Shown here: positions 4,985-60,074 of the stretch, piece after piece
Layout: each line of letters starts with the position of its first letter
How positions within the stretch are numbered: the stretch's first letter is position 1
Source: Bugula neritina
Lineage: Eukaryota > Animalia > Bryozoa
NCBI GenBank assembly: GCA_964035545.1
Contig: OZ037770.1
Location: 8,562,973 to 8,626,972, forward strand
Length of the DNA: 64,000 nt
Direction of reading: 5' to 3'
Notes under the pieces: generated by a model
Told to the model about the DNA's origin: nothing
The model's database searches: none
The model's input: the letters and a program-made list of their open reading frames with translations, nothing else
Position numbers and translations under genes: made by a program

Positions 4985-7959
4985 CTACAGGATAGACTCA
5001 TCGAAAGCTCCATCACTGAGTAGCCTGTGGCCAGTTCGACTCAGCACTTCCCGCATATGTACAGTGTAGAGTGGGAACATGGCTAAGGTCATGTCCAACT
5101 TCTCTCTCAAGTTGATGAGATCCAGCATAGCGAGTATGGGAGAGACGTGATCATTGTCCTTATTTCTAATCCTGTTGATTGTGAGTAGCAGGTTGGAGAC
5201 TGAAATCATCACACGTATGCTATAGAGTATAGTGCGTTGTATGTTGTATATAGGTACAGTGTGTTGCATATATAGTGTGTTGTATATGCAGTGTGTTGTG
5301 GGAGCAGCCGTGGTCTAGGGGTTAGAGAGTTTGCCTAGTAAGCACCAAGTCATGGGTTCGAGCCCAGACAAAGGCCGTTAATGACGTTAGGAAGAGCATC
5401 CAGTCATGATTGCTCCTGTGCCTCATATGAATACGTCCTTGGCCCAATTCAACAAAAACCCTTTCCATCAGGGGTTTTCTCACATGGATAGTGACTATAA
5501 ACTTGCCTAAGTATATACCGTGTGTTGTCTGCTCATAATAAAATATTTACCCCACTGGTAATCAAACTGCAGACCCCCTCCCCCCTGCAAGCTGATATGC
5601 TAACCATTACACTACAGGGGTTACTGGGGAACCTCAACACTACACCCATGGCAACAGTTGAAAAGTGTACCTTTTATACAAATAAATCTCACACAAGTTT
5701 ATAGTCACCATCCCTGTGAGAACTGCTGCTGTAAAGGTTTTTTTTTTCTTAAACAGGACTAAGGACTTATTCAGATGAGGCTCAGGAACAATTATGACTG
5801 GATGCTCTTCCTAACATCATCAATAGCTTTTGCCTGGTTTAAAACCATGACTTCATGCTCACTAGGCAAACACTCTAACCCTTAGACCACGTCTGCTTCA
5901 AAAGTCTGCCTTTTGATTGACTAATAACAAATTACAGCACAATATATAACTGTGAAGCATGAAATTAGCTAGTCAAACCTTGTGGGATGCACTCCATCTG
6001 AGTGAGTAGGTTAGAATCCCGGATGAAATCAGAGAACTTGGCAGTAACCAGTAGCTCAGTGAAGTTGACGATATACCCCATTATATATTTGCAGAGAAAC
6101 TCAGCTGAATGGGGACATTCACTAAACTTTCTCAGCATGTATATCACCTCCTCAACACTGTTCATATTCTACAATGATTACATCATGTACTGTATAGTGG
6201 TACTGTGATGAAGTGCTGTCTTCCATTATATTTCTGTACAAATGAGCTAACAGATGGGTAACATGAAGGTAACAGGCATCTAGTTGGGCATAATAAAAGT
6301 TGCGACAATAATATACTGCCTTGTAGGAATATGCAATGTGAAGCAGGGAAATTTTGAATGGTAAAAAATAAACATTCCTAAAAATAGACATTAATCGGTA
6401 CATTAAAAATAAACTAAATTACAGCTTTTCATTTCTTTGTAGTTACCAACGCACATAAAAACTGCATACATTATGTGACTTTTTGCTATATCTAAATGTC
6501 ATAGCGCAGTGTAATAAGACGTGTTAGTTTACTATTTATAAGGTGTCATTACAGAAAGATGCTTCCCACTTGATAAAATTCCCACTTAAACGCTTCCCAC
6601 ATGGCTATTTATTTTGGTAAAATATATGTATTTTATGAGGGGTTTGAGTTTGGAGGCACAAAATATATTACATTTAAAATTTTTAACAGGTCTAATAATC
6701 ACATTTCACAATTACTTAAATGTGGTCAACATTCTAAATCCTCAATTTCAAATGATTTCTTACTTTCAATTGTGTGAAATATTACGAGAAATATGTTTAA
6801 GCATAAGAGTAATATCCACATACAGTATATATAACATAAATGTAAGCACGTAGGTTGACACATAATATATATAATAAATTACATCAGCTGCTTTCACAGT
6901 AGGGGGACAGAACACAATGATGAGACATCTGGTGTAGAAATCCTCTAGTGACGTCATAACCTCACCACATCTGGACACAGCCATTGACACCTTCAATAAC
7001 TCTACCATACACCTGTATATAAAAGTAAAGGGAACTAGCAGTAGAATACAACTACCACATATAAAATTTGCAGTTCCATTTTACCTAGGTGTGATACATG
7101 GTGAACATTGTAGAAATACTGGTGTCAGGTAAAAATGGCACAAATGGAGTAGTGGGCAAAAATAGCACATTTTCAATATTGGGGCTTAGGGTAGGGGGTT
7201 GGGGGATTTGGGAAAATTTAACATCAGTTGTGCCATTTTTGCCTACTTTTCCATTTGTGCCATTATTACCTGTGCTATTTTTACCTAAAATCATAAATAT
7301 CATGTATGATAAGGTCCGAAATGCTACAAAGAAAAAAAGCAGAAATCTTGCACCGGCATTCTTCACTTAAAACATGTGCGAACAGTTTTTTGCTTACCAC
7401 GCATGGGAAACAACCAGCACCTATATTTAGCAACATGAAAAACAACTTGGATCTTTCTACAATAATTATGCATGCCGGAATTTCATCAAGTGAGTGTCCT
7501 AAATTATTCTATAAATGCTGCATGCGATCACAAGGTTGAAGTGTTGCTGATGAATTATGGGGCATGGCAGGAAATATGGGATAGTGTGTAGATGGAATGC
7601 CAGTTGGAGATGTCCACTGAATAGCAGGCTTATGGCATATGAAACACACAAAATAATAGTTGGATGATGAACAGATTTTCATATAAACATAAACAAAATA
7701 AATCAACTGCTGCATGAAGAATGTTTTCTGATAAATTTAAATGAGGAGACATGGAGACTGGAGGAGAAATCCCTTTGAATATATTATATAATCTGAACTG
7801 CTACCCGCTTGCATAAATGAGAAGTTAATTGATAGTATCTGGGCCCGTTTGAAATCACATTTATAAACTGTGTCTAATATTATACCAAGTTATGTTATAG
7901 CTTTTGGAGTTCAGTATGCGCACACTAATATATAGCATGATATATGTAAAGCAAACCTG

Positions 7960-8029
<70 letters not shown>

Positions 8030-11000
8030 GTATATGTATGTATATATACACACACAATTGAACTTGCATTCCTTTGCCTCAAGATGTAAAGACATGCATC
8101 ACTTGAAATTAGCTATAAGAAATACTAACTCACAGCATGTCTGCATTAAACTCAAAGTAATGAGTATTAATTTATGTCAACAAGGCCAGGGCAGGAGAGA
8201 TGAAAGAGAAATAATTAGCTAGTTAAGACATCAAGCAGTACACACTATTATTATATATTCAGAGCTGCATTGCAAAACCTTGTGAAACATAAAATTGGTT
8301 TTGGTGTTATGCTAATCAGTTGGGCTATTTATAGTGACTAAATTAGCCCCACTTTACAGAGCTGGGGTTAGAGAGAGGGAGTGAGTAGAAGGGAATTAGT
8401 TGCTCTTATTTATAGGAAGCTAATTTCCTCAGAATTAGTCATAAAGAATGTGTCCAGAAGAGTTACTAATTAGACTTCAGGGTCTGGCAAGGCACAGAGA
8501 GGGAGAATTTTATTCATACCAATAATATGTTTTCTTAAGAGATTTCACACCCAGCCAAGCTATTGAGGGAGCCTTTTGTGATTGTTTTCATCCTAATAGT
8601 ATATTATACATCATAGACATTAGTGAGAACTGGCCATTAACATTCTACATATACTAAATGATAAGTGAATAGATAAATAAACATAGATAATACATTACTT
8701 GGCATAAACAATACATTCATAATACAGCATATATATCTCAAGCAGCGAACTAGATATGCCATGTAATATTGATATACGATAATGTACTATGAATATGGTT
8801 GTTTGGACCAGCTATCAGTAATAGATTGAGCTAAAATGCCTTACATGAGAAAAAACATACTACTATAGGCTAAAAAAGCTATACCAACAAACTTAACCAA
8901 CAAGAAGAGAATTGGGCAAGTTTTCATTAATCTACCTTGACTTGGCTATCTTTGTAGATTGGCCCATCCTGTTCATAACTACGAAGCAGTGAGCTCAGAA
9001 AGTTTTCACCGGATTGCAGTGAGTTATTGTTATTAATATATAATATACACACAGTAGGTTGTACCTTGTAAGTTGTCTTCTCATAGTCTTTGTTTCGTCT
9101 ACATTAGGCTCACTGGAGAAGTCCGAGCACAAGCTGTCTTTCAGTGTACGTACACAGTCTAAGTAAGTGTCTATGACAACTGATGTAGCCCCGGAGTTCA
9201 ACACCACCTATCGGTTGAAAATAACAAAATGAGTGAACTTCATACTTCATATAAATATTTGATGCTTCTGTAAATTTTACAATCTCTGCCACTTGCCTGA
9301 CATTATATAAACAAGTGTATTAATATATCATGTAGGAGTTACCTAGCTGTGTTCTACTGTTTATAAGACTGACTTGTTGAAAAATTTTATTGAGGATTGT
9401 TCCAATTTTACATATATTGTTCATTCAGTTGCTTTAAAGGGAGCAGCCATGATCTAGGGGTTAGAGTGTTTACCTAGTAAACACGAGGTCCTGGGTTCGA
9501 ACCTGGGAAAGGCCATTGGTGATGTTAGGAAGAGCATCCAATCATAATTGCTACTCTGCCTCATTTAAATAAGTCCTTAGCCCGCTTTAACAAAAACCTT
9601 TTCCATCAGGGTTCTCACAGAGGGATGGTGACTATAAACTCGCGTGATTTCATCAAGTTGCTTTAAACTCTTTAAAAATATTTAGGCTGTTGAGACTATT
9701 TATTTGAAATAAGATCACACTCACACTATTAGCCTAGGGCCACACGGTGCGTATTTTCGCATGCGAAAATTGAAATCACAAGTAGCAAAGGTGTCCACTG
9801 TGCGCGTTGAGAAAACCTTCGCACTTGTCGCTCTGCATTTTCAACGCAATTGCGAATCGTCTCTGTCGTCGTCACCTAATTGGCTGGTAGCTATTCAGCG
9901 AGCCCAATTTCTTTATTTAGTGCTATATTCCAGTAAATTGCGTTTTATTGAAAGCGAGTGCGATTTAAAAATGAAAGCTTTATTTATCACGCATCACTGA
10001 CGCTACAGTGGACACCTTTGCTACTTGTGATTTTAATTTTCGCATGCGAAAATACGCACAGTGTGGCCCTAGGCTTACAGCAGCAGCGGATCTGTTAATC
10101 TAGACAGCAGCTGATAAGATGTTGTTATAAGTTTATCCATTGTAAAAAATTCTAGCATCTTATAATTTATTAATTGGTTCTACTTCTACATTGTCAATTA
10201 CCCCTATGTAACTCCTTTAGGTTATCATAAAAAAAGTTTTTCAAAAATAAAATTAACTTGTATACAGATGCTTTTCACTTTTAACTGTCATTTTTCTCTA
10301 AATTTTCTTTACCTGCAGCATTGTTAAATGCATATATAACTTGACAATAACAGTAATTAATATGTAAAAAAAAACCTGAAACTGCAATGGAACGATAAAT
10401 GAGTTTATAAAACAAGAACCTGTGTTAGCATGATATCAGGTTTGCACAAATGTATGCTGGGAAAAGTCATAATCTAATGAGACTCGCTAGATGCAGCACA
10501 AACTCTCTAATTTGAGTTTGTATAAAGCTAGGGCCACATTGATCAAAATAGTGAAAAGTGTGTGAAATCCATGCACACACAACTGTATTTGCCAATGGCT
10601 TAACCAAATTGTTTCATTTGAAATCACACTTGTTATCTCAATAATTCGGAATTGATTAGACACTTTAAAACGTACATCTAAAACACAAAAATGTTAGCCA
10701 ATTAGATTATTACTGCAGAAACTGTTTGCAGTAATTTGTTCAACATTTTGATAGAATGAAATTCGCGCAAAACAGCCCATTTTTTTGCCTTTGCCAAGTT
10801 TTTGCTAGCGGCCTGTGCAGAAATCTGCCTAATGTGTCAATAATATACAAATTTAATTTTTCATACACACGGTACCATCATTGTACTAATAACTGTCAAT
10901 TGTTGGTACAAATATGTAAATCAAAAATACAGTCTTCTTTATCTGCATGATTTGGCTAACTTGAAAAAAAATATGCTATATAATTTGAGAATAAGTTTTC

Positions 11001-16700: not shown

Positions 16701-19700
16701 CTTGACTATTGCTAAGAAGAAATTTCATTTACATGCTTTCAGAAAATATTATTATTTATATTATCACTCTTACCTAGGCCTTACTGAATTGTGAATAATA
16801 ATGATAATTGTTTATATCAACAAATGATCCATTATTTTAACCATGATCATGAACTTATACCTTTTAATAATGTGCGTTGTGGATATGATATGCTTTGGTT
16901 TTTGATTATATTGATGTTATTATGGCTATTTAATATAAGTGTAAAAATAGTCATACTCCAAACATCTATCTTAGAAGGTTTTATCACAATGTATGACTTT
17001 ATTAAAAAGTTATTAATGGTTTTCTAAGACAGAAATTCAATAAATACATACATAAATAATTTGCCATGCATCTAATTCGTCATCACATTTGCACAGTATG
17101 CATAGTACAGTAAACCATAGATACAAATAAAGAGTATGGGAGTTGACCTAGTAATTTACAATTATTTAATTAATTTTAATGGCCGTATTTAAATTAGGTG
17201 TCAGTATTTAAAATTGAAGTTGAAATATAATTCAACTGAAGCTTCTCAGTCACTATTAGTAAATGGTATTTTCCATCTGCAACCAATGTTGAATAAAACA
17301 TTAAAATAATGTGTATAGCCAAGATATGTAACTGTTTAAATCAAATTCCTGGTAACAAATGAAATAATTGATATAATGGTCTGCTCAAGCCTGTGCCTAC
17401 ATATATACATATATACTTGTTCAACATAGAGAGGTTTCAGTAATAATATAATACAGCCCAGTAAAATAAGCAACTCCTTTCTCATTTATAACAAGTTTCC
17501 ATACCATACTGTATAACATTATCAATTTAACTCAGTTTTGCTTTGTATATAAGACCATTATATGTGAGATGGGCATAAATTTATATTTATTGAAATTGAG
17601 ATTTTATAGATTGAATTTTTACTGCAAATAACTACACACATTTTTAAATCACAGGATGGTAGATGAAGGTCACTGCTAGTCCAACATGGTAGATCACATG
17701 ACTGCTGCCTTAATGGATATATTGTTAATAGATGCTGTCACATGACCGGCATATCTATCAACAGGTAAGTGTCTTTATATGCCAATATACTAGTTATTTT
17801 CTGTACTAACAATGTCACTTACATACACATTACTCTTGGCAACCTTTTTTGTCTTTATAGAATAATGCAGATAGAAAGATGCAGATATAATATATATCTG
17901 CATCTTTCTGTTCGGTCTGTGTCCAACTAACAACAGTATCTAAAGCATAGACTTTTTTACAAAGTTGTTACACAAAAAATAGTTATAAGAGATAACAGTC
18001 ATGGAAATTTTATTTTATAGTATATAATACCATATGGCTACTAACAGCCCCTGTAGCTGGGTAAATGCTTGAAGAAGCCGTATCTACAATAGCCTGGATG
18101 TAACCTCAAATATACAATAGATAAATTAGGAGTTGTGTTTTCAATTAATATGCTATATTCTCATGCTGTAGTTGTCTTCTTTTGATTTAATTAGTGGCTT
18201 TCTGGTAGCCAATTGTTACTCCAACCAACCACCAACTTTTCAACACTAATCATTCATCTACCTGGAATTTGTGATATATTTTTAATTAAAAATGAATTCC
18301 TTTTTCAGTTAGTTTAGTCTGCATAATTGTTTCAAGCTTAACATTCATTGAGCATTGTTGAAGGAGCAATTATGGTGAAACTATGTGCTGCACCTGTGAT
18401 TATTTTACTTAGATTTCAGGATCAGAGGTTAATTTTTCCTATGCTCTAACGCTATTATGGAGCTTTGTAACCCCTCCCTCATCAGCTGCTTTCTTAGAAT
18501 ATAGAGCTACTATGTTTTTTGGTTTTTAACAGTAAACTGTTATTATCTCATTCCAGTTACTCAACTCTTAGGTAGCTATCAAAATAAGCAATCTGGCAAA
18601 ATGTAATTGCTCTGCTCTTTGAAAATGTTCTTCATAGCCTGTTTACCTAGTTAATGGCGATCATTGGGGCCTCAGAGGCCTCTCCTCCCTTCTAAGTAGC
18701 AAATATCAATAACTCTTAAATGTTATGACCAGGTTCAAGAATAATATGCAGTTTGTTCAAAATTTCGTTCAAATAGCATGCCTTTTCTATCAAAATTACA
18801 AACTTTAAAAATAGAAAAGGCATAAAATATAATTAAAATTTTCAGTTTCCTAACCCAAACCTTTCAGTAATTTAAACTTGGGTACAATTCTACTTGTTAA
18901 ATTGTTTTCACTCACATTTTTATTCTCAATGAATGTCTAGTTTCCTTCTAGATCTTTCATTGTGACTCTTTTAAATAATTGCTGGTTGGTTTAATAAAGT
19001 AGCCACAATTTTTAATTTATTTCATAACAATCTGCAAATTGTCCATAATTTTGACGTCTATTTAAAGAGCTATTTGGGCAATTATAATAGAGTAAATAAT
19101 TGCATATTATTGTTATATTTTTAACATTTCTAGCTGAATTATAAATCCAGTTTAGCAAAGATGCATCTTCTGGAAAGATGTCTCCTTTGCTCATTAGCGT
19201 GGACTCGGGTTATTGCAACAGCCACTTGGCTGGTATATTTAGCAGTCGAGTTCGTAATTTATTGTACGTATTACAAGTGGAAATGATTGAGCATTTGACA
19301 TTTGATAGCACAAGGCACACTTGCAATGCTAAAACAACAAAATCATTTCTGAGCTTCATTTGTTGCGAGTGAATGAGTTCAGGATATTCCCTGCATATGC
19401 ACTTACAGGTGTATTATTAAACAGCTCGATTGTTTACCAATATACTTGATAATTTGCAATCTCAGCGAGTTTTAACTATTTAGAAATTTGGTTTTAAATA
19501 GGTATATGTAGATTTGCTTTTGGAGTACTAGTTGCACGTGTTATTTAGTTTATTGGCTCCTAGCCGACTTTACCACATTGCGGTATTATCACAAGTATTT
19601 ATTCCTTTGATCTCTGCCGCCGTCCAATCAAAGCATAATCGTATGCAGATGAACGTTCGGCTCTAAATGAACAGATTGCGCTTATTATAACTTTGTCTCT

Positions 19701-49042: not shown

Positions 49043-49780
49043 AATTCTTCTAACATCTAACATGATAATAGACTGGAATTATTTATAGAACTGTAGTACA
49101 ACTAAAATTCACATTTCGTAATATTCAAAATGGCATGAAGTGAAAGTGCCCGCATATGAATTGCATTTTATGTATTTAACTCAGCTACCTATTGCATCTT
49201 ATCTCAGACAAATGAAATTGCTCGTTCACGCGAATGATGTAAAACATTACACATCCGCCAAAGTTTTCCTACCTTAGAAATTAGACCATATGATCATTCT
49301 CACAAACATCATTACAGGAGTGGATTAGTAGGGGGTTTAATAGCACAGCTTATTAAATATGCTTTGGGCTTCTACCAAACACAGGTAACTATTTGGCTGC
49401 TCTAGGCAAATTGGTAATTCTAAATGATAAATTATGTAGTCTGCATACTAAATTTTTCAAAACTAATAAAATTGCCACAGACACTTGAGAGGGCTTTTCA
49501 AAACAAATTAAATTTTGTACTCAAGTCACTGGCTCATCTTTAAAATACGAAATAAGTTTTATACTCTGAAGGCAATTTTATTTGAAAACTCAGTATTTTT
49601 TATAAGTTTCTTAATAAGCTTACTTTTATCATTTTATTCAACAATTAGTATATAATGGAAATAAATTACCAAATTAACCCCCCATGTAAAAGCACACTCC
49701 TTGCTATTTGGTGACCTACGCAGAGGAACTTCAAATTAGTCTGATAGATGCAAGTCATGCAGTCTGAAGGTTTCCAACTG

Positions 49781-52700
49781 ATGGAAAGGATGTCTGTCAA
49801 GTGCTGTCTTCTTCTGGCAGCTCTAGCTGTGTCTGCAACTTGTAAGTATTCTCAATATGTCGTTCTTTTCAGAATCCTTGTGACTCTTCAACTACTTTTT
49901 ATCACTTAAACTAAGCACTTGTTTAACAATGTGAACTAATCTCGATTTTTCTAGAAAGTTCTCAAAATAATGGAAGTTTTTTTATGAAAAATGTTGTAGA
50001 CACATAATTTCTAGCACGCTAGAACCGCTTGGTTCTAATCATATAGACCTAGCTGGTATAACTTCCATTTCGCTACAGGGAATGTGGTCTGTGGGCAAGA
50101 GATTTCTATTAGAGTAAACCCAAGCCTATCACCTGCAGTGACACATAGGCCAGTAACATCACCACCCATTGGTCAGAATACTAGTATATGCTACAGATAT
50201 GTAGGCTGTTTCGACACGTACCCTCCATTTGACAACACTGGGGGCGTTCTACCCAACCCGCCAGAGAGAGTTGGCACAGTGTTCCTACTCTACTCACCAA
50301 AGAGTAAACTTGTTGGTAAGCTGCTGCTCTCTTTTGGTGATGTTGTGACCCATAGCTCTGATCTGTCCTGATGCTCTAGCTTCGTTTCCTGGCTAATTTT
50401 AGGAACCTGACAAGTTTTCTAATGTTCTACTTGTTAAATAACTGCTGCCAAGTTAAAAATCCAAAGGCTAATATTTAAAGTAGTTACACTAACAACACAC
50501 TATATGACATTCAAACACTCTGTCAAACACAATCATAATATTGCACCTTTAAAAAGCATTCAATATGATGTTGGAATTTTTTAATTTCCATTTATGTATT
50601 GAAATTTAAACTATGTACTGCAGGGCAGCAAATAGACTATAAAGATGATGGATCAACGTTAGATAATACAGACTTCAACCCACTATTGCCAACCAAGTTT
50701 GTTATTCATGGGTTTACACAGAATGAGAAGGAGAAGTGGGTTAATGAGATGAAAGACGCATTGCTCACTACGGTATATCATATTCATCATCATTTTTCTT
50801 GTCATAAACAAAGTATTTGGTAGTCAGAGCCTGCATGCTAAGTTATACTACATATTTTGTTACACGTATTTTCATTGGTCAAGATGAAGCTCACTACAAT
50901 AATATTTAGTCATAAACTCTCCTCCTCTCCTCCCTCTCTCATATGCTAAATTTAGATCACACCTACAATATAATGCCTATTCATTATTAAAGCCAAATCA
51001 CTCTAACAATTTGATTTGCTTTGAATTCGACCCAGCACTGACTAAGGCAATGTACACTGATCACTGATTGGTGTACAAGACTACCAATTACTTGTTTATT
51101 ACTCATTGCTGTAGACAGAAACTGAAGAGTGACTTATTCTCACTATAAAATATGTCTTTAATAACAAATATATAATTCCATTCCCTTAATAATTCTCGAT
51201 GAATTATTTAAAAAATAAATACCTTGACTAAATTAGCTGAAACTTGTTGACACTTATATATGTATATTAGTGTGTTATTGCATGTTTCAGGGTCCAATGA
51301 ATGTAGTAGTTGTCGGGTGGGGTGAGGGGGCCTCCGCACCAGACTACCCTAAAGCTGTTGCTAACACCCGACTTGTGGCTAAGCAAGTGTCGATGTTAGT
51401 GGAGCTGATGATTAAGAAGGGGATGGATGTCGGTAGAATACACCTGATTGGTCACTCTCTCGGAGCTCACGTGTCTGGATATGTTGGCGCCGACTTGAAT
51501 GGCCAGTTGGGACGAATTTCTGGTGAGCAGCAGATTGTCATGCCTCCTACTCTCAAGAGCATTATAGATGATGTTGACCTAATTCTGCACACTGACACAT
51601 GTAGCTTATATATAGTTCTGTGTACTTACACATGTGTACCTTGCACTTACACCTACATCTATGTACCTACACAATTGACTTACACCTACATCTATGTACC
51701 TACACAACTGACTTACACCTACCTCTGTATACCTACATAAAGCTTTATGTACTTACACATGTATACCTCATACTTGCTCTGTGTACATACAGATAAGACT
51801 TACACCTACATCTATATAGCTTACACTTGAACTCCTGTGTGTCTTACAGCTATGGATCCTGCTGGGCCGTTCTTTGAAGGCAGCGACGAGAGAGTGAGAC
51901 TCAACCCCTCTGATGCCAAGTTTGTGGATGTTATTCACAGCAACGGCAAACCAATAACCAGCGCCGGGGCTGGAATGTTTGCTTCCTGTGGCCATGTTGA
52001 TTTCTATCCTAACGGCGGCAAAAGTCAGCCGGGCTGCCCTGATTTTTATAGCAATGTCTGGAAAACAATTTTACGATTAGATTTCAGTGGTAAGATTTAT
52101 GAACGTACAGCTAGCAGCATTCCTGTAGGGTTTCGTATGCTATGTTCAATGCCTTTTTTCAAATATCTGCATGGTTTAGGATTCTAAACTTATTAAAGAA
52201 AATCACAAGGTTGTACAAAGTCACTGTTTATTTTATTCTGTTATGTTTATCGCAAAGTTTCACTCACCAGAAAATTCTGAGCAGGTCAGGCACGGTGTGG
52301 TTTGTATCTGTTAGATAGCTTATTTACGTAATTTAACTCGATGTAACAGTAACTTATTGAAACACTTGGCTGTTCCTCCAGAGATAGGTTCCCTGGCTTC
52401 ATGCAGTCACAGTCGATCCCACCAGATGTATATAGAGTCCATATATAACAACAACAAATGCTCATTGACTGGCGTACCATGTAACTCCTGGGTGAGACAT
52501 GCTCTCCTCCCTATCTCGTCCGTTTGTTTATTGGTTGTCATGGTTACACGTCCAGTGTCTTGTCTCATGTTATATATAGGCTAGAACAATGGTATCAGAG
52601 TTTAGTATCTCCTTAGCTATTCCATCTCTACATAGCTCTTTATTTCTTCTCTGTGACTCGCCATGTCTACAGTTTCCTATTTTTGGGTGGTTCGTATTCT

Positions 52701-55700
52701 TTTTACTGCCTTACACTTGTGAGTACTTGTGAGTACTGCATCTCATGTGAGTTTATAGTCGCTATTCCTGTGAGAGCCTCTGTTGGAAAGGAGTTTTTGT
52801 TAAAGCGGGCTAAGGACTTATGTGACAATGAAGCAATTATGACCGGATGCTTTTTTTAACATCACTGCTAGTGTTTGAACTGGAACCACTGTCCTTGTGT
52901 TTACTAGACCAGGCTTTAACCGTTACGCTATGGCTGCATTTCATTCACTTGATATTCTTTAGTATTAATGGCTTGCATATAGCTCTATTACTAAACTCTT
53001 ACGGCGAATGTCATTATTGGCTAATAGAGAAACACCTAAGCATATTCTTCAATCTTTTACTTCAGCTGTTCTATGAAATGCTACAAGTTGCACTCTACCT
53101 CTTCTGGTCATGTCTCAGTCACCGGTTACAGCTATGACTTGCTATTTGTAGGAGTCGGCTCCCTTGCCTCTTGTAGTCACAGTCGCTCTCATTACTATTT
53201 CATGGAATCTCTCACTGCAAAGGGGTGCAAGTTTTTGGCTCACCCTTGCAATAGTTGGGTAAGACTCTACCCTGTCTGGTTACATAGGGGGTGTCCAGTC
53301 TTCTAACAGTACAGTTGATTATATGTGTGTAGTTAAAGGTGTGATTTTGCTTTTCATGTACCCTTTCTCTTGACTCATGACTAGTACTTACGTTCTCTTC
53401 TAATTTCCTCTACCTCGTGCTCTAATTGGGTCATTTTACTTTAGTACACGTCAGCAAATAATGACTAAAACTTGAAGTTTGCTGAAAATTCATGAAAATT
53501 TATTGTATAGGGTATTTCTATGTGTTGATTCTAGCTATGCATAACAAAAAACAGCTAGGAGGGGGCTCTGCAACATTAAAGCGCGGCGTTATTGTCATAT
53601 CAGCTAAATACATACATACATATACGTATATATTTTCGTGTGGTTATGAAAAACTGTCACGATCCGTATATCCTAATTTTCTAACCAAATTAGGACAAAA
53701 CATAGAAAGTCAAGCCCAAAACAAAACAAACCTTGATTATTTAGTTGCATTTGTTAACATTTTAATAGTTTACGGCAAAAAAATCATATATAATATCGCA
53801 GCTAAGTTGTAAAAAAATAATTAAAAACTAGAAATATTGAGTGTGCATGTACTAAATTAGGTAAAATGACCTAATTGCTGAACTAATCTTTCATTGGTGT
53901 GTATGTGACTTTGCAGCTGTCCCACAGCTGGTTTTACCCTCTTGTTTACCCAAATTCTTCCTCATATATGTACGCTGATTTACAATAAATCTGTTATGTA
54001 CTAATTTTGCAATCAATGTTGTATAGAAATTGTAACTTTTACTTTTTTATACCGACATTCTAAAAGTGTTTTATTGTCCATGTGTTGTACAGTAAAAGCC
54101 AATAGACTGCTTACCCAAAATTAAGTGGTTGAATTAATACAGTAATTATCCAAAAGTTCTGGATCTTTTTTAATAAATTTCTTCTTGACATGTCTTAATT
54201 ATATATAACCTTTTTTAACATAAGTTACATATAATTTCTTCAACTATTTAACATATATCAGTCATATATGCTTTCTTTAACACGTCTTAACTCAACATGT
54301 ATAAGTTATATACTTTCTTCTACATGTCGTAGTTCGTGAACATATATGAGTCATACACAATCTTGTAGGAAGACTACGAGGCAGGTAAATGCACGTCATG
54401 TGGTCCCCATGGCTGTTCAGAGATGGGATATCACTCTATAGAGTATGCTGGGAGAGGTAGTTACTACCTGGTTACTAAAGGTAAGGTAACACTGCAGTAT
54501 CTCAGCTCAAGTTTGTAACGTTTATATCCGGTATACTTATCATAGACTCTTCACTGTATTATAATACTTGTATAAAGTTTGCCCCTTTTACTGGCTATAC
54601 TATTTTTTACATCACTTGCGTTGATAATATTATATAATAAAAATAATTTCCAATTTACTTTTTGTGCTGTGAGATTATCTATCCTCCATGTTATCTGCTA
54701 ACTGCAGCATTTTTGTTGTCACTCGGCAAATACCACTAATCAACCAAAAGTTGAGAATCAACAAAGATGACATACTCGTTTCTGATTGGTTTCTTTCATT
54801 ATACTCTGTATTACAGGTTTTAGCACAGCTTATGCACCAGACGGCGAGATGTTTTGTGGGTCAACATATGATATTTTGATTAAATCTAGCTCAGGTTCCA
54901 ATATCAAAGGAAAGATTGACCTTGACATTAAAGGAACTGAGTCTGGGTTGAACACTCCTTTCCAAGGGTATTTATTAGCTAATCCTAACAGATCACTGCT
55001 TTTATTGAAATGTGTTGAATTAACTTGCTTTGTTTAGGTTTGTTAGTTACTGTTGTGTTTTGATGTTATTGTCTTCTCTTTACTGACATACTTGAGCACA
55101 TGCTGAATGTGTATGTGCAATATTATAGAGTTGAATAATGGCGTTTACTAAACGCAGCGCTTACCAGCTCCTTAAGTGTATCACTAAGCATCTCACACAT
55201 TATACTTGATACAAACACTGAAGTTACCAGAAACTGCATCAAATGTATTTTTGTTTCACTTGAATAAATTACCTCTACTTGTAGAGTATACAGTAAATAT
55301 TATAATATTTTATACTCTAAACCTTTCATCTGGTGGCAGCGTGACTGTAACTGATATTGCTGCCGTCTCTATTCCTAGAGAGAGTGATGAATTGGGAGAT
55401 GAGTCTAAGATAGTCGTGGTAGACTATGACGACTTGGGGGACATCACCTCAGTCTCCCTTACTTACACCAAGAATGGCGGCATACTTTTTGGCATTGGCT
55501 CTGGAACAGATGAATGGAAATTGGACTACATTGTAATTTGGAAAGAAGAGAAACAGTGAGTATTTCAATAGTAATATTTCACTACTTTACTTCACTGGTC
55601 GTCTCTGTGTCATCAAACTAAAATAATATGAGAGAGAATAAGATTTGTCTTCCCAGAACTCCAATACCATGGGACATTTTTTGTTGTTTATTAATTAAGT

Positions 55701-55831
55701 GGCTTTAACAGTAAATATTTCTTACAAGTAGAAACTTTATAATATTGTCTTTCAGGTACAAGTTATGCAACAACAAGCCAACAAAAGTAAAGACTGGTCA
55801 ATCTGTCGTACTCTCACGGTGTACCAGATAG
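49781..55831 (+). CDS. Secreted pancreatic-lipase-family enzyme with C-terminal PLAT-like domain, 513/514 aa. Exons 49781-49841, 50079-50315, 50624-50772, 51291-51522, 51850-52089, [52382-52491 or 53152-53258], 54369-54480, 54817-54967, 55379-55555, 55756-55831
   Basis: Signal-peptide-like start, [23 protein letters not shown] (Ser), MDPAGP (Asp), [30 protein letters not shown] (His), MGY. Start codon is uncertain: in-frame ATGs at 49748, 49757, 49781 and 49790. Confidence 0.95.
51640..51830. repeat. 33-bp degenerate tandem repeat
   Basis: acttacacctacatctatgtacctacacaa(t/c)tg. Confidence 0.85.
52382..52491 (+). CDS. Lipase alternative exon 6a ([37 protein letters not shown])
   Basis: ttcctccag acceptor, TGG|gtgaga donor, 110 nt, phase 1 to 0, open frame. 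Confidence 0.88.
53152..53258 (+). CDS. Lipase alternative exon 6b ([36 protein letters not shown])
   Basis: tatttgtag acceptor, TGG|gtaaga donor, 107 nt, phase 1 to 0, open frame. Confidence 0.9.
53428..53872. mobile_element. MITE sharing GGGTCATTTTAC termini, non-palindromic interior
   Basis: gggtcattttac..gtaaaatgacct with 4-bp duplication AATT. Confidence 0.78.
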
Positions 55832-56272: not shown

Positions 56273-59200
56273 ATGCCGGGCAATTCCGGCTCAAATAAGA
56301 CTTTGCAAAAGAAAAATGGATCTACAGGTAACCTTGGTTCTCCCAAACCAGATTCATCCCAAAGTCTTGCACAGGCTGAGAAACAAGTCTCTATTACTAT
56401 CGATACTTCTGCACAGAGTTGGAGCTTTGCCAAGTTCAAGTTGAATGGTAAGTTAGGGCTATAAGTGCTATCTTTTCTTGACAGTATTTGCACCATGTTA
56501 GTGTCAGCTGTGGAAGGGGGAGGGGGAGGGGTAGGAGTGCTTCATAGCTAAACAGTAGATGGTAAAAGTCCAGTGTTAATCATTAGTGATAGATTTTTAT
56601 ATGTGCCTTTCAAATGTGACAACAGTGTGTATAGAAGTAGTATGTGTATATACTATAGTGGTACTTAGGGTGTATAGCAGTGGCAAAATTGTGTGTATAT
56701 GTAACATCATAAATTTAAAAACATATACTAATTTATTGCAACTTCATTTCTAAGTTTATTTGAGGCGCCTAGAGTTGTTGATATTAAAAACTTTTGATTA
56801 ATAGAATTGACTATAAATGTGTGAGAAAAGTACAGTTTCCAATCATCAACAATTTCTTGTAGATTTTTGACTTCTTAAATTGAAACTGTGTTCCCTATTA
56901 ACTATTAACATTTGGAATCAATTAAAACATAACGTATTATAATAATGGGGAAGTTTGATAATTATTCAAGAGAACACAACTCTATCTAAACATAATTCAT
57001 TATCAGTGCGCTAGTAATATACTTTCTATACAGCTCAAAGCACAGGAAGCAAAGTGTTATAACATTGCTCAAACTCACACGTTCTATTTATAGCTCAAAC
57101 TCACACGTTCTATTTATAGCTCAAACTCACACGTTCTATTTATAGCTCAAACTCACACGTTCTATTTATAGCTCAAACTCACACGTTCTATTTATAGCTC
57201 AAACTCACACGTTCTATTTATAGCTCAAGGTCATACGTTCTATTTATAGCTCAAGGTCTGGCTGCCTGTGGAATCATGTTCTGTATCCTTTCTCCTCTCT
57301 TCTTCTGTTTCTACCTCGCTGCCGCTGGAGGAACCGTTTACACAGGAATTCTGATATTTTACACATTCTGTCTGGCAGGTGAAAACAACTCCATCATAGT
57401 GTATAATGTTCATGTATTATATATATAGCAATAGTAGGCATAGCAGTAGTGAATATAGCAGCAGTGAATATAGCAGTAGTGAGTATAGCAGTAGTGAGTA
57501 CAGCAGTAGTGAATATAGCAGTAGTGAGTATAGCAATAGTGAGTATAGCAGTAGTGAGTATAGCAGTAATGAGTATAGCAGTAATGGATATAGCAGTAGT
57601 GAGTATAGCAGTAGTGAGTATAGCAGTAGTGAGTATAGCAATAGTGGGTATAGCAGTAGTGGGTATAGCAGTAATGAGTATAGCAGTAATGGATATAGCA
57701 GTAGTGAGTATAGCAATAGTGGGTATAGCAGTAGTGGGTATAGCAGTAATGAGTATAGCAGTAATGGATATAGCAGTAGTGAGTATAGCAGTAGTGGGTA
57801 TAGCAGTAGTGAGTATAGCAGTAGTGAGTATAGCAGTAGTGGGTATAGCAGTAGTGGGTATAGCAGTAGTGAGTATAGCAGTAGTGGGTATAGCAGTAGT
57901 GAGTATAGCAGTAGTGAGTATAGCAGTAGTGGGTATAGCAGTAGTGAGTATAGCAGTAATGAGTATAGCAGTAGTGAGTATAGCAGTGCTGAGTACAGCA
58001 GTAGAGGTATAGCAGTAGTGGATATAGCAGTAGTGGGTATAGCAGTAGTGAGTACAGCAGTAGCTGTATTACTATCAATAAGTTTTGTATTATGACTAAA
58101 GTAAATATAGAAGCTTGTAGAAAGTTTTCTACGTAGCAGACTTTGTAGTAACAAATATATAACAAAAATACTTTTTAGTTTTCATAAGAGTCAAGGTATT
58201 GGCCTTTATACACTGTATATTATTTTGCAATGCAGTATTATAGTGGTGGAGAAATTATTTGAATATTTACACCATAGAATAAGTCTACATTCATGTGAGG
58301 GTCATCTAACGCTACTCAGAATGTCTTATTGTAGGTATTGGGTGCAGCTTTATTGGCACATACAAGTGTGCCTTGAATCTGGAGTTGGGCAGCCCTAAAC
58401 TGCAACGGAATGTAGGTACATCACTGTACACATCATGCTGTGTATTAGCCTTGTATTAGTATATAATGTATTGGGTATATGTATTAGTATATATATAGGT
58501 ATTGGTATATATATAGGTATTGGTATATATATATGTGTATATGTATATGTATGTGTATATGTATATGTATGTGTATTGGTATATGTATGTGTATTGGTAT
58601 ATGTATGTGTATTGGTATATGTATGTGTATTGGTATATGTATTAGTGTATGTATATGTATGTGTATGTGTGTGTGTGTGTATGTGTGTGTGTGCGTGTGT
58701 GCGTGTGTGCGTGTGTGCGTGTGTGCGTGTGTGCGCGTGTGCGTGTATGTATATGTATATTTTTTGCATGTTTGATTTATAAAACTTCAGCATACTTTAG
58801 GATTTATATATGCTAGTTAAAACATATACTTCACAGCAAATAATTACTCTACAGTATCTCAATGTAATGCAACTGTATTCTCCACTACTGTTTAGTATCA
58901 TTTATATATTGTAGAGTGGCCTGTATCTGGTGTTCACATGTATGGATGCTTTTCTGGCCATATTCATCTTTTCTTACTCCATTACTGTGATAAAACATTT
59001 AGTATGTATTCCATTATGTTATGGTACTGAATATCGCTAGAAGCAGCACCGGGTTGGGGTTGACTCAGTATAGTATTTGTATACACACCATTGTCCTAAC
59101 TCCAAACTCGAGACCCCAAAGCAATGCAACCAGTGGCGACAAATTTTGTGCTGCTTTTAACGATTTTCTCTATAAACACTGACTTCAGAAAATGTTATAC

Positions 59201-60074
59201 ACTGCAATAGCTTCATTATCTGTGTATATACAAGATAACACCTATGTACTGCCCACTATGCTGATTGGTTGAATGTTTAAGACTGAGGCTAGACTACAGA
59301 GCACCAGCCTAGGACTGGATGTCAGGCCAATAGTATACATGGCCATAGTGTCTTCTATACCAAGCATGGTCTTATGCGTGATGGCACTGTACGGGGCCTG
59401 CTACAGGTACCCCGTCAAACTTGCTCTGGCAAATCCAAAGAATAAAGTTGGTAAAGGTAAGTTATACAGGAGTGAGTTTTCCTTGAAGTTTTTGGACAGG
59501 ATTTATATATCCAAGATTAGAGCTTTAAAACCTCGTGGATAAGTGATTGTATTGAGCACCTACTTTGTATATGAAATAGCTTGTTTCGACCCAGTTTGCT
59601 ATTGCACATTGACTTTTACACACACGCGCACACCCACACACACACACACACACACATGCACACACACGCACACACATGCACACACACGCACACACACGCA
59701 CACACATGCACACACACGCACACACACGCGCACACACACACACGCACACACACACGCGCGTGCACACACACGCACACACACACGCACACAGCGTAACACA
59801 ACGCAACACAACGCAACGCATGCATATTCATGTTATATAATCTTTAGCTGGAAAGACATCTGGATCATCAGCAAAGGACCCAAAATCTCAAAAAGAGTTG
59901 AGAACATCGAAGAACACAAAACTTCAAAAAGATTCTAGAGTTTCTGACGATTTAAAATTTCAAAAAGAGCTGAAAACTCCTAAAGATCCAAAGGCACGAA
60001 GAGAACAGAAAACTCCCAGAGAGTCCAGAGGAAAACGAAGTGTAAAAGCTGCTTCTGGTGTTGAAACAGTCTAA
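56273..60074 (+). CDS. Uncharacterised four-transmembrane protein with Lys/Arg-rich tail, 289 aa (MS4A/CD20-like topology, tentative). Exons 56273-56447, 57250-57378, 58335-58411, 58915-59001, 59282-59456, 59848-60074
   Basis: Six GT-AG exons join in frame (870 nt); four hydrophobic segments; AATAAA about 38 nt after the stop. Confidence 0.75.
57068..57249 (+). repeat. 26-bp tandem repeat x7 ending at a splice acceptor
   Basis: Unit ctcaaactcacacgttctatttatag; six identical units plus one variant. Confidence 0.97.
57423..58062. repeat. 15-bp minisatellite (gagtatagcagtagt), about 42 copies
   Basis: Directly visible; intronic. Confidence 0.97.
58450..58760. repeat. Compound GT/AT-rich simple repeat
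   Basis: 18-bp gtattggtatatgtatgt units grading into (GT)n/(GTGC)n. Confidence 0.92.
59033..59164. mobile_element. Short AAGCAGC-ended MITE family copy
   Basis: atcgctagaagcagcac / gtgctgcttttaacgat. Confidence 0.7.
59618..59820. repeat. (CA)n-rich microsatellite
   Basis: Directly visible. Confidence 0.95.

Follow-up and report, generated by a model that had tools for sequence, protein, structure and literature searches.

Mutually exclusive exons that arose by tandem duplication are a well-described class (PMC5740500, PMC9741552, PMC8373072, PMC9013439). In human KHK (exons 3a/3c) and PKM (exons 9/10), two adjacent homologous exons, nearly equal in length and alike in phase, code for one and the same structural segment, and in KHK the swapped segment holds a catalytic residue that is kept in both copies (PMC9741552). 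Here, we propose that a pancreatic-lipase-family gene of the bryozoan Bugula neritina is very probably built in the same way: an old tandem duplication of exon 6 produced two copies (6A and 6B), which are spliced mutually exclusively to give two lipase isoforms. The gene lies in a stretch of 64,000 nucleotides (nt) from the forward strand of contig OZ037770.1 (assembly GCA_964035545.1, positions 8,562,973 to 8,626,972), which we call the window and number from its first letter, and whose DNA is AT-rich (GC ~0.35).

With the class in general, the locus would share the use of exactly one exon, a frame that is broken by joint inclusion, an old duplication and purifying selection on both copies. 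It differs from the catalogued mutually exclusive exons in its gene family, and in that the lipase pair is, as far as seen, restricted to bryozoans and not bilaterian-wide. Lipases are absent from the main text of two human catalogues of such exons (PMC5740500, PMC9741552). Searches of the open-access literature found no paper on such an exon pair in a pancreatic-lipase-family gene, which agrees with an earlier note, made from the sequence of the window alone, that knew of no described case in the lipase family. A wasp venom study does place a pancreatic lipase-related gene among the alternatively spliced venom genes, the type of splicing not being stated. With the B. neritina gene, the lipase family would join the enzymes diversified by mutually exclusive exons.

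Dscam, 14-3-3 zeta and ATE1 likewise use tandem homologous exons singly (PMC6071210, PMC7797038); unlike these genes, the lipase gene has introns in which no conserved docking/selector pairing was found. With vertebrate pancreatic lipase, PLRP1, PLRP2 and lipoprotein lipase (PF00151; 1LPB, 1ETH, 2OXE, 1GPL), the encoded protein shares the alpha/beta-hydrolase domain, the GxSxG motif, the Asp and the C-x-H, and, as in the vertebrate pancreatic lipases, there is a full-length lid and a C-terminal beta-sandwich domain. We draw a distinction in the source of lid and loop variants, which in vertebrates come from separate paralogues (PNLIP, PNLIPRP1-3), whereas here they would come from one gene by exon choice.

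Two exons for the segment bearing the catalytic histidine

The gene occupies about 49.8-55.8 kb of the window on the + strand and has ten coding exons plus one alternative exon. When their translations were searched exon by exon, exons 3-7 matched PF00151 at consecutive profile positions 56-317, with exons 4 and 5 each above the gathering score singly (66.3 and 88.8 bits against 27); exon 2 alone had no Pfam match. The lipase exons also match solved pancreatic lipases, PLRP1/2 and lipoprotein lipase, with E-values against the PDB down to 1e-20 (exon 4, to pancreatic lipases/PLRP2, 7.6e-12; exon 5, 1.3e-20, with a Pfam E-value of 5.5e-25). In the alignments GHSLGAH falls on the nucleophile motif, the Asp of MDPAGP on that of LDPAEP, and the His of C-S-H, in 6A and 6B alike, on that of the C-N-H of 1LPA/1ETH. 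From established knowledge of human pancreatic lipase (Ser152/Asp176/His263), we take these residues to be the catalytic triad. On the same basis, the Cys of C-x-H closes the lid disulfide and its His is the triad histidine; the PC Cys near the exon end is the first Cys of the next disulfide. Exon 5 contributes the first of the two lid cysteines (QPGC, which aligns with the PGC of 1ETH), and each alternative exon contains the second, two residues ahead of the His, with 24 intervening residues as counted from the sequence. The earlier note had placed a C-x-H with the lid-closing Cys and the triad His in each alternative exon, and the alignment of both to the C-N-H of solved pancreatic lipases supports this placement.

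Exons 6A (110 nt) and 6B (107 nt) have acceptors in which the AG is preceded by a pyrimidine tract (...ttcctccAG for 6A and ...tatttgtAG for 6B), and GT donors (GTgaga and GTaaga). The phase is 1 at the start of each exon and 0 at its end, with exon 5 carrying one base over (52089). In a reading frame test run with a local script, exon 5 joined to 6A and exon 7 is open, as is exon 5 joined to 6B and exon 7, and the inclusion of both alternative exons, or of neither, gives a frameshift and early stops. Each length leaves a remainder of 2 on division by 3, and therefore double inclusion and double skipping both lead to premature stops.

The core of 12 residues common to the two exons has no non-synonymous difference, and 8.0 of its 9.0 synonymous sites differ. 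Over their whole length, 6A and 6B have 57% protein identity and are about two thirds identical in DNA, with one 35-nt block at 80%. They are each other's only significant tblastn match in the 64-kb window, and by tblastn the flanking exons are single-copy there; the duplication is therefore intragenic, and there are not two genes. Both match PF00151 at identical profile positions 259-288 (E-values 3.4e-5 and 2.7e-4) and align with residues ~259-289 of human and porcine pancreatic lipase, spanning the C-N-H, with E-values that are weak (0.09-0.8) because the queries are only 35-36 amino acids long. Thus the description in the earlier note is borne out: paralogous exons of 110 and 107 nt, phase 1 to 0, with good splice sites; an identical core with mostly synonymous codon changes; and a frame that shifts if both exons or neither are used.

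Both forms occur in RNA. We placed on 49720-55700 the assembled contigs of three RNA libraries from two studies and of one DNA-like run (X4): X2 is an oligo-dT metatranscriptome labelled biofilm (2023), X3 is RNA-seq labelled symbiont metagenome (2016), and X1 is from the sample of X3. RNA joints lead from exon 5 to 6A or to 6B. One X2 contig (record 6, 1718 nt) runs through exons 2-5, 6A and exons 7-9, its joint 52491>54369 being read from contiguous pieces of the contig record, and one X3 contig (record 7, 1568 nt) runs through exons 2-5, 6B and exons 7-9. X1 has the joints 52089>53152 and 53258>54369, with GT..AG ends. The remaining introns are spliced out identically in X1, X2 and X3. Relative to the window, the RNA contigs are ~3-6% different per exon; X2 and X3 have equal or nearly equal difference counts for every exon that they share, and those differences that are listed are common to both, so that the two represent the same gene of one sibling lineage. 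That one contig is A-only and the other B-only, from two studies and with otherwise the same constitutive exons, is what mutual exclusivity, as the earlier note had claimed, predicts. Junctions for both exclusive forms rule out that one exon is never spliced in. Among the RNA contigs listed there is none with both exons or with neither, although contigs cannot prove absence. As a separate observation, X1 has a 718-nt unspliced piece over 52227-52789, which is either pre-mRNA or DNA carry-over.

What does the exchange alter in the protein? The fold was assessed not on the window protein but on P0226, the B-form orthologue from the bryozoan Watersipora subatra and the nearest match to the window gene among annotated full proteins. 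Its AlphaFold model (predicted local distance difference test score, pLDDT, 88.5) has PLRP2 and pancreatic lipase as its best PDB matches (TM score 0.81, E 7e-35). In this model the catalytic His lies within a helix that continues for 12 residues past it, followed by a loop and a short strand up to the next Cys. Exons 6A and 6B are identical up to four residues past the His (SRSH). The rest of the helix reads Q/E-L/M-Y/F-I/T in A and an invariant YYFM in B, and the loop reads x-N-x-N-K/H-C-S/G-L in A and x-x-x-G-C-x-F/L-LAH in B. The claim that the helix after the catalytic His is swapped fits the P0226 model, and the swap reaches into the following loop and the strand after it too. Judged from their sequences, the two isoforms are predicted to differ in ~15 residues beside the active site and the lid hinge, and both are presumably complete, catalytically competent lipases.

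Conservation of the exon pair and rival explanations

The B. neritina genome (216 Mb) has only three lipase-family loci, and the gene's own paralogue on contig C8 has a single B-length equivalent of exon 6, fused to exon 7. Sibling contigs (L003, L004) carry 6A at 96% nucleotide identity (3 synonymous and 1 non-synonymous differences), and window positions 52090-53099, which are mostly intron, are 77% identical to L004. In another relative (L012-L014/L016), exon 5 is 57% identical to that of the window. In L016, exons 4 and 5 are followed by an A-type exon, then a B-type exon and then exon 7, and L014 has this series, likewise starting with exon 4, as far as the B-type exon; the alternative exons in these contigs are of 110 and 107 nt, with sites AG/GTGAG and AG/GTAAG. 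Watersipora (L018, OY755168.1) has an unannotated A-type exon at 17693-17802 (110 nt) and an annotated B exon at 19284-19390 (107 nt). A further relative (L009/L010) has an A-type exon of 110 nt, and the contigs of two more (the P0005 and P0011 lineages) stop just past exon 5. In all, A-type orthologues are found in L004, L009, L016 and L018, and B-type orthologues in L012-L014, L016 and L018. Protein searches with open reading frames that span an exon plus its flanks gave no match.

As a side observation, the public Watersipora model P0226 (357 amino acids) has the B exon only, is without most of the lid, and stops ahead of the C-terminal domain. The absence of the A exon from this gene model is a point for annotation correction.

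Past the first six codons, identity is 60-77% between A exons, 79-86% between B exons and 41-55% between A and B, whether within or between species. The proportion of synonymous differences (pS) is 0.72-0.90, which is saturated, against 0.16-0.35 for non-synonymous differences (pN), giving pN/pS of 0.2-0.4. In a 36-column tree the B exons form a clade (support 91/95). The A exons share one extra residue, the motif N-x-N-K/H-C and a GTGAG donor, and their grouping is based not on the tree but on the extra residue, the motif, exon length, order and the identity values. Because the A/B pair is conserved in Watersipora and in the L016 relative, the duplication is older than the split from Watersipora. 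In light of this and of pN/pS at 0.2-0.4 with saturated pS, the earlier proposal of an old duplication under purifying selection is sustained; in the relatives that could be examined over the whole interval (L016 and L018) the pair is intact and of the same lengths, with decay of neither exon.

Outside the bryozoans, the brachiopod Lingula has two tandem lipase genes with one exon 6 each, which lacks the extra residues of both bryozoan exon types. The A/B pair is, as far as seen, a bryozoan feature, with B resembling the ancestral exon and A being derived. We found no evidence of a pre-bryozoan origin of the pair, the Lingula genes and the C8 paralogue having a single exon 6 of B length. In the Lingula anatina contig (L015, LFEI02000497.1), exons 2-4 of the first lipase gene are present twice and are identical (e.g. 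6426-6605 and 8962-9141), which is likely an assembly duplication or a very recent segmental duplication.

Several observations weigh against the mutually exclusive use of an old exon pair. The A and B forms come from different samples (a biofilm metatranscriptome and RNA-seq labelled symbiont metagenome) and not from one animal, and the RNA is in the form of assembled contigs, which give no ratios and lose minor forms. The RNA donor lineage is ~5% diverged in exons from the window genome and is another individual than the sequenced one. Transcripts with double inclusion or double skipping are unseen, and their clearance by nonsense-mediated decay (NMD) is thus an inference only. In addition, a B-type exon was not found in L009, whose contig ends 866 nt downstream of the A-type exon, and the 36-column tree did not resolve a single A-type clade.

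We judge it improbable that only 6B is functional, with 6A a duplicate that is tolerated, is spliced in now and then and has no separate role. Such a reading would draw on the closer resemblance of 6B to other lipases and its annotation by NCBI in Watersipora, on a whole-exon identity for B (71-77%) comparable to that of exons 4, 5 and 7 (68-79%) and above that of A (56-61%), and on the greater depth of the B-form contigs, contig depth being a poor measure of expression. However, 6A has an open frame, a length of exactly 110 nt and good splice sites in four lineages whose introns no longer align, and the A-specific residues (SH-Q/E-L/M-Y/F..ESI.N.N-K/H-C) are kept in those four lineages. Furthermore, pN/pS is 0.2-0.4 at saturated pS, and a full-length A-only mRNA contig exists.

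Slightly less probable still is that exon choice is fixed by lineage, with constitutive use of a single exon in each population or cryptic species. Across the constitutive exons (in the rows shown), the differences from the window are common to the X2 and X3 contigs, which places both in the same lineage even though each form was seen in a different study and sample, and both exons are intact in every genome that could be examined over the whole interval (the window, L016 and L018). That the locus is an artefact of assembly, or a collapse of two incomplete gene copies, is scarcely credible: nothing beyond the bare fact of duplication speaks for it, the copies are only about two thirds identical in DNA, X4 DNA contigs cover the region, and the same arrangement recurs in metagenome contigs and in a chromosome-scale assembly that was made independently for a different genus.

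One segment of the exons departs from the general pattern. The six codons ahead of the lid-closing Cys (52384-52401 and 53154-53171) have 83% protein identity between A and B in this species, and only 0-33% to their own orthologues. Recent gene conversion between 6A and 6B is unlikely, because 8.0 of 9.0 synonymous sites in the shared core differ; the candidate explanations are that both exons have co-adapted to the lid of this species, or that a conversion took place long ago.

Probable exclusive splicing and a possible role of the switch

How might exclusive use of the two exons be enforced? Each mRNA would take 6A or 6B, either of which would supply the lid end, the lid-closing Cys, the catalytic His and the first Cys of the next disulfide. 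The reading frame, at least, would enforce exclusivity, the 110/107 lengths being conserved in three species: transcripts with both exons, or with both skipped, would reach premature stops and be cleared by NMD. Frame incompatibility with NMD is the commonest explanation for validated clusters of mutually exclusive exons conserved from Drosophila to human (20/28 genes; PMC5740500). Two other explanations are excluded, namely steric hindrance (the intron between A and B is 350-1481 nt) and U2/U12 incompatibility (all sites are GT-AG).

Competing RNA structure was also considered and is rejected as a conserved mechanism. The best inverted repeat in the introns of the window (I1, 22 nt, 77% complementary) pairs the 6A donor with the region just upstream of 6B; its duplex, at -29.1 kcal/mol, is reached by 1% of shuffles. 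No counterpart of I1 was found in the relative L014, and I1 is unmatched in relatives; the pairing is probably due to chance or lineage-specific. Of 15 region pairs around the splice sites, none was consistently strong across the window, L016 and L018. The earlier note had proposed to search the flanking introns for competing pairings, and this search gave no conserved pairing across the three species. Comparing the window with L014 or L009 by blastn with short words, only the exons align; GCATG sites are not conserved in position, and the three introns have no match in Rfam.

As for the role of the pair, divergence between A and B starts exactly at the position equivalent to Lys268 of human pancreatic lipase. 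According to the lid-mutagenesis literature, Lys268 and its neighbour Tyr267 contact the open lid. One tentative option, which we regard as possible and no better than doubtful, is that switching exons adjusts interfacial activation or the choice of substrate, with the A and B forms deployed at different life stages or organs and the lid-end codons co-adapted to the species' own lid. The A form might, for example, serve animals that have newly settled or are at the biofilm stage, and the B form adult colonies, and the divergence would extend past that position into the helix and loop packed beneath the lid. If this were true, one gene would cover what in vertebrates is shared out among PNLIP and its related paralogues. 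The exons also offer a natural, evolution-tested pair of variants of the His-bearing segment under the lid, which could be used to probe lid opening, substrate preference and stability.

Exon coordinates and neighbouring features

The features of the gene are collected below. Exon 1 is joined to exon 2 in RNA from all three libraries (49841>50079 in X1, X2 and X3), and exon 2 is 97% identical to the sibling contig L003 and 68% to Watersipora. At the 3' end, the in-frame TGA at 55557 would be intronic, because the donor GTGAGT of exon 9 sits at 55556, and the lipase coding sequence would continue past exon 9. The joint between exons 9 and 10 is outside the stretch 49720-55700 used for RNA contig placement.

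Table 1. Exons of the B. neritina lipase gene and the arms of a candidate RNA pairing, in window positions.
Feature	Position	Strand	Content and evidence
Exon 1	49781..49841	+	Start codon(s) and signal peptide (17 residues); 5' limit uncertain; donor GTaagt; from sequence and open reading frame
Exon 2	50079..50315	+	N-terminal part of lipase domain; RNA contig pieces 50079-50313
Exon 3	50624..50772	+	Pfam PF00151 positions 56-97; RNA joints
Exon 4	51291..51522	+	Nucleophile motif GHSLGAH (catalytic Ser); Pfam PF00151 E 3.8e-18; RNA joints
Exon 5	51850..52089	+	Catalytic Asp (MDPAGP), first lid Cys (QPGC), most of lid; phase 1 end
Exon 6A	52382..52491	+	110 nt, alternative; lid end, lid-closing Cys, catalytic His, A-type helix and loop, first Cys of next disulfide
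Exon 6B	53152..53258	+	107 nt, alternative; same protein segment as 6A, with B-type helix and loop
Exon 7	54369..54480	+	End of catalytic domain; Pfam match; RNA joints 52491>54369 (X2) and 53258>54369 (X1, X3)
Exon 8	54817..54967	+	First part of C-terminal beta-sandwich (PLAT-like) domain; RNA joints 54480>54817 and 54967>55379; sequence
Exon 9	55379..55555	+	Donor GTGAGT at 55556; RNA pieces to 55557, then letters matching 55758 onward
Exon 10, coding part	55756..55831	+	Last 24 residues; stop 55829-55831; inferred from sequence and loose-end RNA contig letters
Candidate RNA pairing, arm 1	52480..52501	+	Over 6A donor; inverted repeat I1, 22 nt, 77% complementary
Candidate RNA pairing, arm 2	53109..53130	+	22-43 nt upstream of 6B acceptor

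In the intron between 6A and 6B, contig depth at 52720-52919 is 8892 (X1), 1114 (X3) and 34713 (X4), compared with ~100 in the vicinity, and loose ends are numerous at 52786-52865. The pattern resembles that of an interspersed repeat of very high copy number, and the region has no match in Rfam. In the intron between 6B and exon 7, 53424-53876 is an element of ~450 bp that resembles a miniature inverted-repeat transposable element (MITE), with terminal inverted repeats at 53424-53448 and 53848-53876 and raised depth over 53320-53919. Downstream of the lipase gene (57406-58095; 58400-58800; 59525-59940) are a long open reading frame built from a tandemly repeated 15-nt unit (SSEYS...) and, in addition, two microsatellite tracts rich in CA/TG.

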